Part shown: positions 45,414-57,319 of the stretch, in pieces | How the letters are laid out: every line of letters starts with the position of its first letter | Position numbering within the stretch: position 1 is the first letter of the stretch | Source of the DNA: Calcarisporiella thermophila CBS 279.70 | Taxonomy: Eukaryota > Fungi > Calcarisporiellomycota | NCBI RefSeq assembly: GCF_041956535.1 | Contig: NW_027192191.1 | Location: 241,698-305,697, forward strand | DNA: 64,000 nucleotides | Reading direction: 5' to 3' | Notes under the pieces: model-generated | Databases searched by the model: none | What the model was told of the DNA's origin: nothing | What the model saw: only the letters and a program-made list of their open reading frames with translations | Program-made: the position numbers and the translations under genes

Positions 45414-46836
45414 CTATTGGCCTGGTGAAGCAGGAGAAGGGTTGGGTATCGCAACCTTTGGTATAGGGGGGACGGGCAACTTGTCTTTGGTTTGGTATCC
45501 AATGCTTGCCATTGCTCGAAGAAGTAGGGGTCCGACCGGCCCACCGTATTGAGCGATCGACTCGGCGAGCGACATGGGCCGATCAGCAGCGAACATCATC
45601 AGGCGCTGGCTCGTGTTCCAGTAGTGCTTCATTGCAACGTGCGACACAGACGAGCCCTGCCGGTAACGAGGGAGCCCCGTCTCGAGCCAAAGATAGTCGT
45701 TCGGCGCCTGCGCGCCAAACGGAAGCAGCGCCAGCGTGTCATTGGTGGTGGCGGCCTTCATCATGTCTCTGGCGGGTTGGAAGTCGGGCGCCGTCTCGAG
45801 CAAACTTGCGACCTGGGCGGGGGTCGTCGACTGGGTGAAGAGCTTGGTGGAGGCGGCGTTGAGCGCCTTTGTGAACTCGGTGCAGCGCTGTGGGGAGGCG
45901 CCGCTCACCAGGGTCATGTAACGGTCCAGAACGGATTCCACAAAGAAGTCATCGGTGGGCATCGGGTTTTCCTGCTCGTCATAGATCAATCCGGCCGGAA
46001 TCAACGAGCCCGGGGAGGCTGGGAGATTGGCCCACGAGCTGAGGAAGCCGAGGCCATGCAGAAGTTCATGGACCACGGTCTCCTCGAAGTCGGTCTGCTG
46101 CGCCGAGGCTAGCTTCGGCCCATCTGCCCAGAAGTGCCATGGAACTATAACGAAAAGAGCAGAGAGCCATTGGTTGGTCAGCCGCCTCTCTCCAAATAAC
46201 ACCGCAATTCAAACTCACGCTCAGCATTGAAATCCGCATAAATGTCATAGGTGTGATAGGCAGGACGCGGCGTGAGATTGAACTGCTTGACCACCGTCTG
46301 CGGGTAGATGCGCTGTACGTTGTCATCGTCCTGGAGCAGCATCATACGAGTCGGCTTTGCCAAGCCTATCAGCCAAAAAAACAAGAGGGAAACGGTCCCG
46401 CATCAGCTACTCCGTGCTGAACGACGGCCAGGAGCAGAGGAGCCCCGCACTTACCCGCTATCGCCGAGAGGCCTCGCGTGCGGCAGTTCTCGTCGATTTC
46501 TGGGTCGCTCTTGCAAAAGAGGTGGAACGACGCGTTCACCCTGACCGGCGCGGCGAAGCTGATAAAGCTGGACAGGATCTCGCCGGACTTGCGGAAGCCT
46601 TCCTTGGCCTTCAGGCACAGCTCAGGGGAGGCGTCGCAGTAGAAGTCGAAAACGAAGGCCTGCGACGAGTTGAAGGTCTCCGGCGCCTGGCGAGGAGCAA
46701 TATCATGGACCAGCGGGCATGGGACGCGAGCGCGTTTGGTGAGGTCGCGCGGATCGTAATGGTCAATACATATGGGATTGGCCAGGGCAAGGGTCAGGCT
46801 TGCAAAGAGAGCGGCAAGCGGGATGGAGAGGTGCAT
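45414..46836 (-). CDS. Secreted zincin-type metallopeptidase-like protein (HExxH)
   Basis: Signal peptide MHLSIPLAALFASLTLALA; motifs 'YPQTVVKQ', 'DIYADFN', 'DFEETVVHELLHGLGF' and 'GSSVSH'. Two introns. Confidence 0.72.
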
Positions 46837-49134
46837 TCTAGCGAGGATGAGAGAGCAGCGGCAGAAGGAGAAATGCACGCCTTGCAATAAAAAGTGGGTG
46901 GCCGGAGACCAGTTGAGGCATTTGGAAAAGTTGATTACTCAACCCTCTCCTCCCGCAGCCTATGGTCGTGCGCGTCGAATGGATCGTGCGAATGAAACTG
47001 CGCTGGCAACCTTAATTTATTTCTTGGGCCGCATCCGCCCCTAAATGGGGAATTGTTCATTTTGCGGGCCAATGGGGCTCGGTGTTCCAAACCAATAAAA
47101 GGACAGATCGGGCACTAAGAAGCCTTGAACTCTAAAATAAGAACAAGAAAGCATCCAATATGCTGCGGAGGCGCTGGCGGCGGGGAAAAAGACAGATGGA
47201 AGGTTCTGCTATACTCTAACGAGTAAAAACCCAACGTGACGCGGCCCTTCTGCAACCTCGTGTCGCTTCAGTCGTCCAAGCTCCAGCTAGCTTCGACAGG
47301 CACCTTCTTTTATTGAGTTGAGGCTGAGGCCGGCACCCTTTCTACCACATCCGAAGGCTTCTGCAAACCCTACACTAGCCGTAATAAAGCACAACAACTC
47401 GAGCTCTTCTCCGTCAATCTACAATGGATAAAGGCTAGTGTATACTGCTGCTCATTGGGCGGGAAACAGTAAAGACTAGCACGCTGGTCAACATGTGAAA
47501 TCTATTGCTAGGCATATTCTAATTTCTTGAACTATACTAAGCGGCATGATTTCGATTTCCTATCGGCTGCATTTTCACGCCATCTCCGTCGTGATAAACT
47601 CTAACGAGTTTAGTTCACTTGGCAGTATTAGCTCGCTGTCCATTACTGGGCGCCCCTCTCTCGTCTCTCGATTTTGTTCTTTTTCACGCTAGCATGCCAG
47701 GAAGAGAGAGCAAGGTATTGCCCAACGCAATAGCCTTTCTCACGGCTTAAATCACTCACGCTTGGATACCAACCCCTCTTTGTAATTGGGCTGGTAGGAC
47801 CCTTCACAGCAGATCAGTTGAGGTAAAGCAACATGGCATAAAAGCGCTCAGAGATACTTGGATAGGCTCTGACATCCGCTTAAGTGTCCTATGGAAATTC
47901 TATTTAATGTTCTATCCTCTTTTCTTTTCAACTAGCCTTTTTTTTTTCACCTTTGAACGACATTAAAGATCTCTGAAGCGATCCATCAAGAGGCCACAGC
48001 TCCTAAAATTCCTCCAATTCAGCTCTTGTTTGCTCCCGTGACAATTCCCATAATGCGATGACGATACCTGCAAAACTCTTCGAGGCACCCTGCTCCTCCA
48101 AGAAAGTGCGAGGCTGTGGGCCTTTATCAATGCGGTCCTCTCATGCAAAACGAATTAAATCTAACGTGCTCCTGGTTTCTGTGTATCCGAGTTGCCTTTT
48201 CGCAATGCATTCGAGCACGTTTTGAGCCGGTGTGCAATTAAAAGTGGTGCTACAGAAAGTACAGGCCGATGCGGGGATGGAGGAAGGTATAGGTTCGCTC
48301 GTTCGATCAAGGATCCGTGGATCTCCATGCTTTCTGCCTCTAAGCACAGGATGTTTTCCGAAACGGAGAGTATAGGAGCTCTCGAAGGAAACTCGGATAT
48401 TCCCCCAGTTTTGCGCGAAGAGTCCTCTCTCTCTCTTGATGGTTCGCGGGGCAATCATTTTTAGAGCAACAAGGTTTGATTACCTACTCTTGATGAACAT
48501 TGAATCAATTTGGATTTACGGTCCTTATTTTTCACAGAGATTCGAATGAACCACGATTAATCTCGGGAGGAGGCACAAAACCCGTTTCCATTTCAACCCA
48601 AATAAACCATTCTTCGAATTGTTTGTTATTATTTTCCGGGAACTACAAACATGAGGTGGAAAAATACCATTGAAGTCACCGTGGGCACAAAACCCGGGCT
48701 ACTCTCAATACCATATGGTGAGAACAGAAGGACAACAATTCGGAAATACCGGGAAATGCCCCTAACTTATTCCATATCCACCTTCTTGTGCTTGAAAATG
48801 ATCAAATCTACCCGGAAGTAGCAGTCATGGACTCAGCCGGTGCGTGTGTAGTTCTTCGACACCCGCGGTTCATTTCCTTCCCTTTCGCTAAAGGAATCCA
48901 TAAATTGCTTATATGTGCTCTCGGTATATAAAGTGGTAACGAAAGGCAAAAAAATCGAGACTTTTTATACCTACTATTTAAGCCTGGTGCTTTTTCAATA
49001 CCTTCTCCTCTCCTGCCACTTGTATTGATCTTTCTTTCATAGACACCTTTCAGCGAAAGGCGCCCCTCTGCTATTTACATTACTATTGACATATCTATTT
49101 CATTCGTTTATTACATTTTGTATTCATATCCATC

Positions 49135-50567
49135 ATGTTAGTCATCACCCCCGCGCTACTTGCCCTGGTCTCCCTTGCCTTGGCTCAGCAGGATCGCCCC
49201 CGCTTCCAGCTTCCATTCCAATGCAATACTCGTTGGCAGGCCAACACGCGTAATAACCACAGTCCTCAGAATGCCGTCGACTTCAACAGGTTCCCTGAGG
49301 ATTTCAATGATCCCATTCTTGCGAGTTTCGACGGGAGGGTCTCCAAGGTTCAGAATCTCGGAAGGGTCAGCTATGGGCTGCACGTTATTGTGGACCATGG
49401 GAACGGATGGAGCACTCTGTATGCTCATTTGAACAGCGTCAATGTTAGGTAAGTGGAGCCCATGAGTAGAAACGTGAATTTTTCCATAATCACTCTCTAA
49501 CCGGTTGAAACAGGCAGGGCCAACAATTGAGGCAAGGACAAGAGTTAGGAAGGCTTGGGACGACCGGGTTCAGCACAGGCCCGCATTTGCACTATGGTAT
49601 GGCAAGCTCTATGGCTGGATTTGGATACCATGAGCAGGGACTAATTTCATGCTTTTTGCTTCCACCTCGCAGAACAACGTTTCAACAACCGCGATGTACG
49701 CATTGCATTTGACAACCAGCCTCTTAGATACTTTGCAAATTCTAATCTAGTGAGCCGCAATTGCGGTGGAGGCAATGGTAACAATAACCAAGGCAACGAC
49801 AATCAGGGTATCGACAATCAGGGCAATAACAATCAAGGCGTCAACAATCAAGGCAACAATGGCCGCGGTAACAACAATCGGGTCAACGGCAACCGAGGCA
49901 ACAACAACCGAATCCCTGGCAACCGAGGCAACACCGGCCAAGGCAACATCGACCAGGCCAACGGCAACCGAGGCAATGGAAATCGAGGTAATGGAAACCG
50001 AGGCCCTGGCAATCGCAATGGCACCGGAAACCGTAGGAAAGCTCGTCAATCCGCTGAACCCGACCGGCCCACCCCCACTGCTGAGCCTACGGAATCCCAG
50101 CCAGAAAACACCACAAGTGCCGAGCCCGCTAAACCCAATTCTAATGAAGAGCCCGCTGAACCTAATGCTAATGAAGAGCCCACTGAAACCAAGACAAGGT
50201 GTAATGCCACTGAGGAAGAAGAAACTGGAAAGGGGAACTGCAAAGGCCCCTTCAAAGTCAAGGCCAGAGGAGGGAAGCTTAACATGCGTTCCGGTGCGAG
50301 CGTGTCTGCCAAGAACCTTGGTCAGCTCTCGGATGGCGATGACGTGAAAGTGTGCTGCCAAACACGCGGTAAATAGCTAGTGGATTTACGTGATAGTGTC
50401 TTTCTGTTTTCGCAAGACATTGACAGCGGAAATATAATGCTATAGGCTCTCGTGTCAGCGGAACTTTCGGCTCTAGTACCATTTGGTCCCGTCTAGATAA
50501 CGGGGCATTTGTGTCGGATGCATTTATCGACACTGGAAGTAACGACTTCGTTATGGACCAATGCTAG
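49135..50567 (+). CDS. Secreted M23 family peptidoglycan endopeptidase with an N/G-rich linker and a C-terminal bacterial SH3-like domain
   Basis: Signal peptide; motifs 'HSPQNAVD', 'YAHL' and 'GTTGFSTGPHLHY|EQR'; C-terminal 'LNMRSGAS...VCCQTRG|SRVSGTFGSSTIWSRLDNGAFVSDAFIDTG'. Introns 49449-49513, 49597-49672 and 50369-50445. Confidence 0.9.
49775..50035 (+). repeat. Degenerate ~15-nt tandem repeats encoding NQGNN/GNRGN units
   Basis: Recurrent ggcaac(c/a) and aatcaaggc units in the M23 linker. Confidence 0.75.
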
Positions 50568-52678: not shown

Positions 52679-53440
52679 ATGCCAGACATCAACCCACTCC
52701 GGTTGTATTCTCATCTAACCACGCTTCAATCCATATCAGGCTTGGGATTTACCGTGACTTTAGTTGTGCATTCTACCGCGATCTGCCTCGCCCCGCTTGG
52801 TCTTGACAAAGCGAATGGCGCCATGCTCCTAGGGCGCGAGCTATACCAGACGCGATTAGAGCCTCTTCTCGTGCACGGTGCCATAGCAGGCCACGTAGTC
52901 GCAGGGGTTGGTAAAAGACTTATTTTGCGTCATTTGCGTAAGCGGCGAGGAAAAGGGAGGGACCTTAAAAAGGAAGCTGCGACGGTTAATGCGGATGAAC
53001 TAAAGGGAACGCTCCGCTACCATGCTGAGACCGGATACCTGCTAATTCCCATTCTAGGGGTCCATCTCATTCTAAATCGGCATCTCCCTCTCTCTCATTT
53101 TGGTGACTCTGCTTTCCTCGACTTCACATTTGTCACGGCAGCGTTGGAGCGTTACCCCATCTGCACTTCGTTGGGTCTCAGCGGGTTGTCGCTGCTTGGC
53201 GTGTACCACTGTGTATCCGGGCTACCAGTGATTTGGCGGAGACTTCATAGTAGTGAAAGTGAAAAGGGTACGCACAAACGCCTGAAAAGAAAATGGAGTT
53301 ACGGAGCAGCATTTGGCTGGTCAGCCCTAATGGTGGTGGGGCTAATGGCCATCGGGGGTGTGTTCAGCTCAAGGCGGATTAAAATTCCGCTTCGCCGGGA
53401 TTACTACGCAATCATGGATCGAGTCGGGTTTCTCTTCTAG
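52679..53440 (+). CDS. MCP1: Mcp1/DUF1691 mitochondrial outer membrane protein
   Basis: Motifs 'LQSISG', 'MLLGRELYQ..LEP', 'HVVAG', 'GYLLIPILGVH' and 'YHCVSG'; several TM helices. Confidence 0.75.
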   Translation: MPDINPLRLYSHLTTLQSISGLGFTVTLVVHSTAICLAPLGLDKANGAMLLGRELYQTRLEPLLVHGAIAGHVVAGVGKRLILRHLRKRRGKGRDLKKEAATVNADELKGTLRYHAETGYLLIPILGVHLILNRHLPLSHFGDSAFLDFTFVTAALERYPICTSLGLSGLSLLGVYHCVSGLPVIWRRLHSSESEKGTHKRLKRKWSYGAAFGWSALMVVGLMAIGGVFSSRRIKIPLRRDYYAIMDRVGFLF

Positions 53441-56630: not shown

Positions 56631-57319
56631 TTACTGGCAAGGAAGGCCGGGTTTGGAGGAGGGGGTCTTGAAGAGGGCGACCTCCTTCTTTCGGCGCTTG
56701 ACCAGACCTGGGAGGACTTTGCCACCACCGTAGACCCACTTGGGCAATTCTTGCTCGGCCACTTTGTTCGGGTTTTCTGTTGAGAGAAAGAGAAAGAAAG
56801 AGAGGTCAAATACCAGGGGACAGAAGACGAGGGTGTGAGGCGGTGTTACCCTTAGCGTTGAGTCGCTTGCGCAGAGTCGAGCTTCGCAAGTTTCCGCACC
56901 CGAGGTTGAAGGTGAAGCTTGCGAGCGCGCCCAGCTGGTTGTCGTTAAGCGGAACGGTGATGCTGGTCTTGAGGCATTTCAAGGCGGACTTCAGGTCCTG
57001 CTTCAGCAGAGCCTCGCCCTGAGCTGATATGCATCCAAAACGCGATTAGAGCGAGAGCTGGACCCACGGGCTTTCCAGCCGAAACAACATAGTTACCTTT
57101 GGTGATGGGCTCACGGATTCCATTGCAAGCACTGCCGATGCAGGCGTGGCCGTAGCCAATGGTCCTGACACCGGCGGGATCGATGTAGAACCGGGCTCTG
57201 AACCCTTCGCTCTCCTTGATCAGGTTGAGCGCGGCCTGGTTGGCCTGGCAAGCGATGGCGTCAACAAGCGCGGTCCCGGTGAGAGCGGCGGTGAGGTAGA
57301 GAAGGAAAGACAGCTTCAT
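56631..57319 (-). CDS. Secreted GH24 (T4/phage-type) lysozyme
   Basis: Signal peptide; catalytic E-x8-D-x5-T in 'SEGFRARFYIDPAGVRTIGYGH'; motifs 'NDNQLGALASFTFNLG', 'SSTLRKRLN' and 'KWVYGGGKVLPGLVKRR'. Introns 57024-57096 and 56777-56849. TATA at about 57400. Confidence 0.92.

Follow-up and report, generated by a model that had tools for sequence, protein, structure and literature searches.

A 64-kb stretch of the genome of the thermophilic, early-diverging fungus Calcarisporiella thermophila CBS 279.70 (phylum Calcarisporiellomycota; contig NW_027192191.1; hereafter the window, whose own coordinates are used throughout) carries, at 49135-50567 on the forward strand, a gene for a putatively secreted peptidase of the M23 family with a C-terminal cell-wall-binding domain (CWBD). 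When read and translated, the gene consisted of four exons and three GT-AG introns and ended in a TAG stop codon (Table 1). Exons were searched singly, and full-length comparisons were made with the deposited protein P0003 (XP_069256517.1 / KAL1925255.1). Residue numbers count from the ATG at 49135; the numbering of P0003 is higher by 20. We consider it very likely that this single-copy gene descended from a bacterial secreted two-domain peptidoglycan endopeptidase captured by the fungus, and that its product probably cuts bacterial walls. Secretion, zinc binding, substrate and ecological role are what we infer from the sequence and the structure models.

The exon structure was examined against the domain profile and an intronless relative. 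Exons 1 and 2 matched positions 12-57 and 59-85 of the Pfam Peptidase_M23 profile, which was thus contiguous over intron 1. By BLASTP against an intronless Lysobacter open reading frame (ORF; locus L001), residues 7-104 of exon 1 aligned with 112-209, residues 2-27 of exon 2 with 212-237, residues 1-36 and 184-230 of exon 3 with 239-279 and 268-317, and residues 3-39 of exon 4 with 322-358, the last 37 residues (E 3e-10). The four exons were collinear with this ORF, and each junction left one residue, corresponding to the split codon (zero gap). P0003 (424 aa), annotated as 'uncharacterized protein VTP21DRAFT_138', uses the identical three intron junctions. The G+C content (GC) was 0.36-0.47 in the introns versus 0.53 in the exons. 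The sequence-only reading of this stretch, which preceded any search, had proposed these gene coordinates and this anatomy, and both held up on reading, exon-wise Pfam comparison and BLASTP; its three GT-AG introns were confirmed by the zero-gap junctions against the bacterial ORF and by the deposited model.

Table 1. Features of the M23 gene and its upstream region, in window coordinates.
Feature	Position	Strand	Remarks
Exon 1	49135-49448	+	In-frame translation
Predicted signal peptide	49135-49185	+	17 residues, hydrophobic core, A-L-A before predicted cleavage site; read from translation
Exon 1, mature part, M23 N-terminal half	49186-49448	+	FQLPFQC motif; PF01551 E 1.8e-10
H42 / D49 / H98 codons	49258-49260 / 49279-49281 / 49426-49428	+	Invariant columns
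Intron 1	49449-49513	+	65 nt, phase 2, GTAAGT..CAG, CTAAC branch-point motif, GC 0.415
Exon 2	49514-49596	+	M23 core with HxH motif; H129 49584-49586, H131 49590-49592; PF01551 E 2.5e-7
Intron 2	49597-49672	+	76 nt, phase 1, GTATGG..CAG
Exon 3	49673-50368	+	M23 C-terminal end, linker, exon-3 part of CWBD
Exon 3 start, M23 C-terminal end	49673-49764	+	Up to conserved Cys of SRNC
Linker	49765-50232	+	~150 residues; N/G/Q/R-rich, then acidic P/E/T-rich
CWBD, exon 3 part	50233-50368	+	BLASTP to bacterial M23 C-termini; PDB 8b2h; SH3_3 E 0.0035
Intron 3	50369-50445	+	77 nt, phase 1, GTAAAT..TAG, GC 0.364; splits CWBD
Exon 4	50446-50567	+	Second CWBD half; conserved terminal Cys, then TAG
Alternative 5' exon, deposited model	48651-48717	+	22 residues of P0003; doubtful
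13-mer GGCACAAAACCCG, two exact copies	48572-48584 and 48684-48696	+	450-560 bp upstream of ATG, 112 bp apart

Exon 1 (41.3 bits) and exon 2 (31.2 bits) each exceeded the Pfam cut-off of 28.7 bits for PF01551, to which P0003 also has a precomputed assignment. H42 and D49 lie in NHSPQNAVD with the spacing H-x6-D, H98 lies in YAHL, and H129 and H131 lie in PHLH; these columns were 99-100% invariant in alignments of 153 and 81 homologues. The motif H-L-H-x-E, invariant among the family homologues, is kept in exon 2. Of the M23 columns that reach at least 95% conservation among 153 non-redundant homologues, the fungal protein retained all 16; at a threshold of 85% it retained 33 of 36. The zinc ligands that the sequence-only reading had taken to be intact (the H..D of HSPQNAVD and the HxH of PHLH) thus fall on invariant columns. 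C30 (in FQC) and C163 (in SRNC), whose columns were 96-98% conserved, are likely disulfide partners.

The AlphaFold model of the M23 domain had a mean predicted local distance difference test score (pLDDT) of 92.2 and a predicted template-modelling score (pTM) of 0.86, with the pLDDT dropping past the SRNC cysteine. Structural comparison by VIA-align returned DipM (Z 17.2, root-mean-square deviation (rmsd) 2.0 Å) and ShyA (Z 17.1), followed by lysostaphin (Z 15.5), LytM (15.3), beta-lytic protease (15.3) and LasA (15.1). All matches had rmsd values of 2.0-2.5 Å and identified the M23 / LytM beta-sheet fold; the closest solved structure to the domain has ~33% identity. A PDB search with the N-terminal motif region (P0003:42-100) gave chance matches only, and the assignment of H42 and D49 as zinc ligands therefore rests on family invariance and on the whole-domain fold matches.

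Lysostaphin and LytM (M23B with SH3_5) resemble the fungal protein in combining a secreted zinc endopeptidase with a C-terminal SH3-like wall-targeting domain, a combination read here from sequence and models. Their sequence similarity to it was weak (E 7e-9 to 1e-5), and they have the classical HxxxD, whereas the fungal protein has H-x6-D as its first zinc motif plus an N-terminal FQLPF extension. The SH3b domain of lysostaphin and ALE-1 belongs to a different SH3-like family, with template-modelling scores (TM) of only 0.41-0.43 to the model of the fungal CWBD. The H-x6-D motif and the low TM to SH3b rule out assignment to the lysostaphin-type class (M23B + SH3_5). The M23A enzymes LasA (3it5), beta-lytic protease (8af1) and pseudoalterin (6ik4), secreted bacteriolytic enzymes of predation or competition, aligned over 131-137 residues at rmsd 2.3-2.5 Å (Z 15.1-15.3) with the N-terminal extension included. 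LasA and beta-lytic protease covered model residues 3-146 and pseudoalterin 3-143, the most coverage among the low-rmsd M23 matches, and the sequence alignment with LasA ran from the FQLPF region onward. These enzymes are 19-26% identical to the fungal domain, lack the CWBD and did not score above the M23B members in Z, and we claim no subfamily membership.

The C-terminal domain was first assessed against Pfam. In an exon-wise search of this intron-split domain, the exon 3 piece matched SH3_3 (PF08239) over profile positions 2-27 of 54 at 17.9 bits, against a cut-off of 27; exon 4 alone gave no match to SH3_3, and the precomputed Pfam list of P0003 contains PF01551 only. Many bacterial homologues carry PF08239. 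By phmmer, the domain matched the solved SH3-like CWBDs 8b2h, 8b2g and 8b2f (E 2.7e-8, 1.3e-7 and 2.3e-7, respectively). Its model (pLDDT 92.0) aligned in Foldseek with 8b2f from Trichophaea saccata at TM 0.81 and rmsd 1.2 Å and with 8b2g at TM 0.79, and other SH3b folds reached a TM of 0.54 at most. The SH3b-like wall-binding domain of the sequence-only reading is thus upheld as a cell-wall-binding SH3-like fold of the 8b2h/8b2g/8b2f kind, while its match to SH3_3 itself stayed below the cut-off exon by exon. The last 77 fungal residues were 37-45% identical, up to the final cysteine, to the C-terminal domains of ~40 bacterial M23 proteins (BLASTP), and the family-invariant W, D, T and terminal C are all kept. 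No second copy of the CWBD was found in the Calcarisporiella thermophila genome.

Moroz et al. (2023; PMC10394673) described this CWBD in muramidases, with triglycine bound to one of the domains in the crystal, listed M23 among the catalytic modules joined to it in TrEMBL, and stated that the disulfides Cys9-Cys53 and Cys33-Cys72 are conserved in all examples identified. The CWBDs of the fungal muramidases belong to the same domain family as the one studied here (TM 0.79-0.81, rmsd 1.2-2.0 Å), but they are N-terminal to a glycosidase, whereas here the domain is C-terminal to a peptidase. The two-disulfide rule also does not hold here: the equivalents of Cys33 and Cys72 are present, but Met and Ala occupy the Cys9 and Cys53 positions. 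The bacterial relatives share this one-disulfide cysteine pattern, which marks a bacterial-type CWBD variant. The shared pattern fits a joint arrival of the CWBD and the M23 domain from bacteria, and not domain shuffling within fungi.

Relatives of exon 1 were sought in an exhaustive HMMER search of 1.84 billion cluster representatives. Names were available for part of the matches, and the statements on names below concern the best 150 matches of this search and the best 120 of a word search. Only P0003 itself (100%) fell below E 1e-30, with 176 proteins below 1e-10 and 918 below 1e-3. The next matches were 45-60% identical, the best non-self one 60%, and every named one among the best 150 was bacterial. 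The word search, queried with the M23 region of P0003, gave 1380 matches; the best 120 were 41-55% identical, and all named ones among them were again bacterial: ~20 Actinomycetota (Stackebrandtia, Saccharomonospora, Actinophytocola, Nocardioides, Streptomyces), Bacillota and one Chloroflexota. Cluster members included Laceyella sacchari, L. tengchongensis and Thermoactinomyces vulgaris (P0164), a Bacillota metagenome-assembled genome (MAG; P0286) and Priestia (P0008). Among the named proteins in the best 150 exhaustive and the best 120 word-search matches, the query was the sole fungal one. A word search with exon 1 alone gave two short bacterial or metagenomic matches, its length window making it uninformative on fungi. 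When one genome for each bacterial species was searched by pattern, 19 loci were found. The best 12 comprised 11 Actinomycetota and one Lysobacter, with uninterrupted ORFs collinear with the four exons, and the identity of exon 1 to bacterial ORFs was 47-60%.

The closest non-self relative of exon 1 was P0004 (60%), from an ENA metagenome contig of 605 bp with a GC of 0.59. The P0004 frame runs on across the site of fungal intron 1, and the sequence therefore looks bacterial, not fungal. In this sequence (L026:239-605), a TAG takes the place of the conserved Tyr in TLYAHL, with the frame staying open past it; the coverage was 1.3x, and the TAG is probably a read error.

The named relatives that share both domains came from Bacillota (Laceyella/Thermoactinomyces, Symbiobacteriaceae and the Bacillota MAG), Actinomycetota (Plantactinospora, Allonocardiopsis) and Lysobacter. 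Uncharacterised M23 + SH3-like proteins of this kind include WP_102993375.1 of Laceyella sacchari (P0164 cluster), HEX6593205.1 of the Bacillota MAG (P0286), an ORF of Plantactinospora sp. (in L004) and the L001 ORF, from Lysobacter sp. 1R34A. The bacterial relatives and the fungal protein have in common the order signal peptide, FQxPFxC, M23 core (H-x6-D, HLH), Cys pair and CWBD ending in Cys, which is essentially the motif order that the sequence-only reading had given. Between the bacterial two-domain relatives and the fungal protein, the M23 domains were 49-55% identical and the CWBDs 37-45%. The bacterial genes are intronless, whereas the fungal gene has three introns and encodes three extra cysteines near the CWBD. 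The M23 + CWBD layout was common to ~40 bacterial proteins and no closer fungal relatives were found among the named proteins of the best-match sets, which supports the proposal, already made from the sequence, of a whole two-domain transfer from bacteria. We regard the transfer of the whole two-domain gene as well supported by these comparisons.

Other bacterial members of the family have exchanged the C-terminal module. In addition to the SH3-like CWBD, we observed FG-GAP/VCBS, PF03995 (inhibitor I36-like), tachylectin and BslA-like repeats in this position (L002-L003, L005, L007-L009; P0008, P0020, P0177).

The fungal protein departs from its bacterial two-domain homologues most visibly between the domains, where a linker of ~150 residues compares with ~10-20 (Gly-rich) residues in the bacterial proteins. 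Two tandem repeats lie within it, one with a 15-bp period at 49780-50004, encoding G-N-N-N-Q/R-like pentapeptides, and one with a 27-bp period at 50122-50190, encoding E-P-A-x-P-N-x-N-E. The linker also holds N-glycosylation sequons, and a dibasic RRKAR site lies between its basic and acidic halves. This repeat-built linker looks like a post-transfer expansion. After entering the fungal lineage, the gene would have gained three spliceosomal introns, adopted the base composition of the host and acquired the long linker of repeats that now separates the M23 domain from the CWBD.

The fact that every close relative is bacterial could also be explained by bacterial contamination or a chimeric assembly. 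However, the otherwise collinear coding sequence is broken by three introns that carry fungal splice and branch signals, and the gene is present in a single copy ~290 kb into a 1.70-Mb contig of a 28.2-Mb genome assembled in 116 contigs. Ordinary eukaryotic-type genes lie on both sides of the locus, including the fungal mitochondrial outer-membrane gene MCP1 (52679-53440) 2 kb downstream. The GC of the M23 gene is 0.53 versus 0.68-0.71 in the actinobacterial (Plantactinospora) and Lysobacter homologues, and its GC at third codon positions (GC3), 0.56, is within the 0.41-0.74 range of the long ORFs of the window. The sequence-only reading had argued against contamination, an argument that the introns, the 1.7-Mb contig, the fungal neighbours and the host-like GC3 bear out, and we consider the chance of such an artefact negligible.

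A fungal M23 family inherited vertically from ancient times and since under-sampled would need no transfer at all. A single genome of Calcarisporiellomycota is represented among the proteins found, and early-diverging fungi are sparsely sampled. In addition, the same genome contains a second M23-like gene at G000:C41:45328-45576 (L023:1444-1767, +), which has introns, a classical HxxxD motif (HNGLD) and a PF01551 match of E 2.1e-7. With just 17% identity to the gene at 49135-50567, this second gene represents a separate lineage. The best-match sets described above contained no named fungal protein besides P0003, the two-domain layout is common with bacteria down to the terminal Cys, and the fungal sequence was placed inside the bacterial radiation, not beside it. 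Vertical descent thus appears very improbable, if somewhat less so than an assembly artefact.

The trees did not point to one donor. In a tree of the M23 domain (153 rows), the fungal sequence fell in a polytomy inside the bacterial radiation, on a branch of 0.83 compared with a median of 0.27. In a two-domain tree (26 rows, 226 columns), it grouped with the Bacillota MAG protein P0286 at 96/95, with a fungal branch of 1.22 compared with a median of 0.23. We view this pairing as suspect because both sequences deviate in composition and the branch leading to the fungus is long. Approximately unbiased (AU) tests rejected none of five placements: Plantactinospora (p 0.44 and 0.28), Allonocardiopsis (0.69), Laceyella (0.59) and Lysobacter (0.15). 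A check for shared indels gave no donor signal; a one-residue insertion after FNR occurred in 19 scattered sequences, including P0004, Actinophytocola, Janibacter and Lentzea, and is probably homoplastic. Among the named relatives of the M23 domain, the majority belong to Actinomycetota, the group that the sequence-only reading had named as donor. This part of the proposal is not established, as the named two-domain relatives span Bacillota, Actinomycetota and Lysobacter, the M23 tree leaves the fungal sequence in a polytomy and all five placements passed the AU tests without rejection. The donor is best described as a bacterium of an M23 + CWBD family centred on Actinomycetota and Bacillota, with the bacterial origin secure and the phylum not fixed by the trees. 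On ecological grounds, Laceyella, Thermoactinomyces and Symbiobacteriaceae, thermophiles of self-heating plant material, are plausible neighbours of a thermophilic fungus.

The start of the gene differs between our reading and the deposited model. In XP_069256517.1, the coding sequence begins with an ATG at 48651, and an intron of 424 nt (48718-49141) is removed to join at 49142. This intron would exceed each of the others (65-77 nt) more than fivefold, and it contains a TATA-like box near 48926. In the bacterial homologues, the signal peptides end directly before the conserved FQxPF motif. We favour the ATG at 49135, because its signal peptide abuts FQLPF as in bacteria and the 424-nt intron is outsize; it gives a cleaner, compact 17-residue signal peptide just before FQLPF. 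The deposited 5' end is likely a mis-annotation, in which the signal-peptide-like segment is buried behind 22 residues, and we take the N-terminal 17 residues of the 49135 model as the predicted signal peptide.

Further downstream, a GH24 (phage-type) muramidase exon lies at 56945-57319 (-), 6.4 kb from the M23 gene, with a Pfam Phage_lysozyme match of E 4.9e-6. Its only sequence match in the PDB was the Trichophaea saccata GH24 muramidase 8b2s (E 3.6e-5). Since the genome contains no other copy of the CWBD, this neighbouring GH24 lacks one. Two peptidoglycan hydrolase genes, M23 and GH24, thus occur within 8 kb.

With its predicted signal peptide, intact zinc catalytic site, conserved Cys pairs of the kind common in extracellular proteins, and wall-targeting domain, the architecture is probably that of a secreted bacteriolytic endopeptidase. 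The signal peptide would export the protein from the hypha. The M23 domain would hold zinc by H42, D49 and H131, with H98 and H129 as the catalytic histidines, and would cleave a peptide bond in the cross-links, so that bacterial walls are weakened or lysed. Fungi have no peptidoglycan, and the target would therefore have to be bacterial. The fungus might gain by killing competitors, by feeding on bacterial cells, or both, and the 'secreted weapon against Gram-positive bacteria' of the sequence-only reading can reasonably be inferred.

A protein of the same bacterial origin could nevertheless serve a purpose other than warfare, such as scavenging peptidoglycan from dead bacteria, managing endohyphal or surface bacteria, or proteolysis of a glycine-rich substrate that is not peptidoglycan. 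LasA and pseudoalterin, structural neighbours of the M23 domain, act on elastin besides peptidoglycan, and the long fungal branch allows for a functional shift. Relatives of the fungus in the Mucoromycota host endohyphal bacteria (PMC8091615). On the other hand, the retention of the CWBD and of all catalytic residues speaks for continued action on cell walls, the signal peptide points outside the cell and not to an intracellular symbiont compartment, and the GH24 muramidase gene 6.4 kb away fits an extracellular bacteriolytic toolkit. Overall, we find a role outside warfare unlikely, though worth keeping in mind. We think it less likely still, and in fact improbable, that what remains of an old transfer is a silent or decaying relic. 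The long terminal branch and the uncertain 5' end would suit a relic, but all four exons have open reading frames and are bounded by canonical splice sites, and all invariant family residues, the conserved CWBD-disulfide cysteine and the terminal Cys are intact. Three introns and full compositional amelioration imply a long residence, during which a neutral sequence would lose its frame and motifs.

Several observations weigh against a captured and still functioning wall-cutting enzyme. The start is ambiguous, as the deposited model replaces the Met-Leu of the 49135 model by 22 extra residues that precede the hydrophobic stretch. In the two trees the fungal branch is 3-5 times as long as the median branch, which could reflect relaxed constraint or a changed function. 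Given H-x6-D in place of HxxxD, specificity is not transferable from lysostaphin or LytM. Cleavage at RRKAR in the linker might part the two domains. Finally, Calcarisporiellomycota contributed one genome to the proteins found, and with a single genome represented, neither the age of the transfer nor purifying selection within fungi is measurable.

Transfers of GH25 and other lysozymes provide the nearest parallel to the capture proposed here. GH25 lysozymes are horizontally acquired antibacterial wall hydrolases in eukaryotes (Metcalf et al. 2014, PMC4241558), and a survey of horizontal gene transfer in 829 fungal genomes includes lysozymes, while its text contains neither M23 nor peptidoglycan (PMC11708051). 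The comparative study of thermophilic fungi that produced the Calcarisporiella thermophila CBS 279.70 genome likewise mentions no M23, peptidoglycan or lysozyme in its text. The pattern is the same in that a bacterial wall-degrading enzyme resides in a eukaryote free of peptidoglycan, but the enzymes are glycosidases there and a peptidase here. Our searches of the literature returned no description of an M23 peptidase gained by a fungus through transfer. To our knowledge, the documented fungal captures are glycosidases (GH24, GH25, GH184). As a tentative possibility, which we put forward with some reserve, the gene may represent the first M23 peptidoglycan endopeptidase domesticated by a fungus: a complete lysostaphin-like weapon from thermophilic bacteria of a shared self-heating habitat (e.g. 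Thermoactinomycetaceae, actinomycetes), with its linker rebuilt, and deployed perhaps together with GH24 to lyse competitors.

If this is true, the protein would be a naturally thermostable bacteriolytic protein that can be expressed in eukaryotes. An M23 enzyme from a thermophile, secretable by a eukaryote, is a candidate for bacteriolytic use, and it belongs to the discovery space that yielded the GH184 muramidases. Captured bacterial wall-degrading enzymes in eukaryotes are a recurring and instructive form of adaptive gene transfer, and a lysostaphin-class peptidase that moved together with its targeting domain would broaden this pattern to include the peptide cross-links of peptidoglycan. 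Such a transfer would also show a multi-domain architecture surviving intron gain, with one intron inside the binding domain, as well as linker expansion. At the level of annotation, the analysis flags a probable 5' error in the deposited gene model.

Two minor observations concern the region upstream of the gene. ORFs of 262 and 172 aa at 45414-46887 (-) had no Pfam match at E 0.01 or below. Nearer to the ATG, the 13-mer GGCACAAAACCCG occurs in two exact copies (Table 1), the only two in the 64-kb window (0.06 expected) and throughout the 28-Mb genome. With up to one mismatch allowed, the region upstream of the GH24 gene gave no copy. The second copy falls within the 5' exon of the deposited model, and the pair is possibly a promoter element of the M23 gene.

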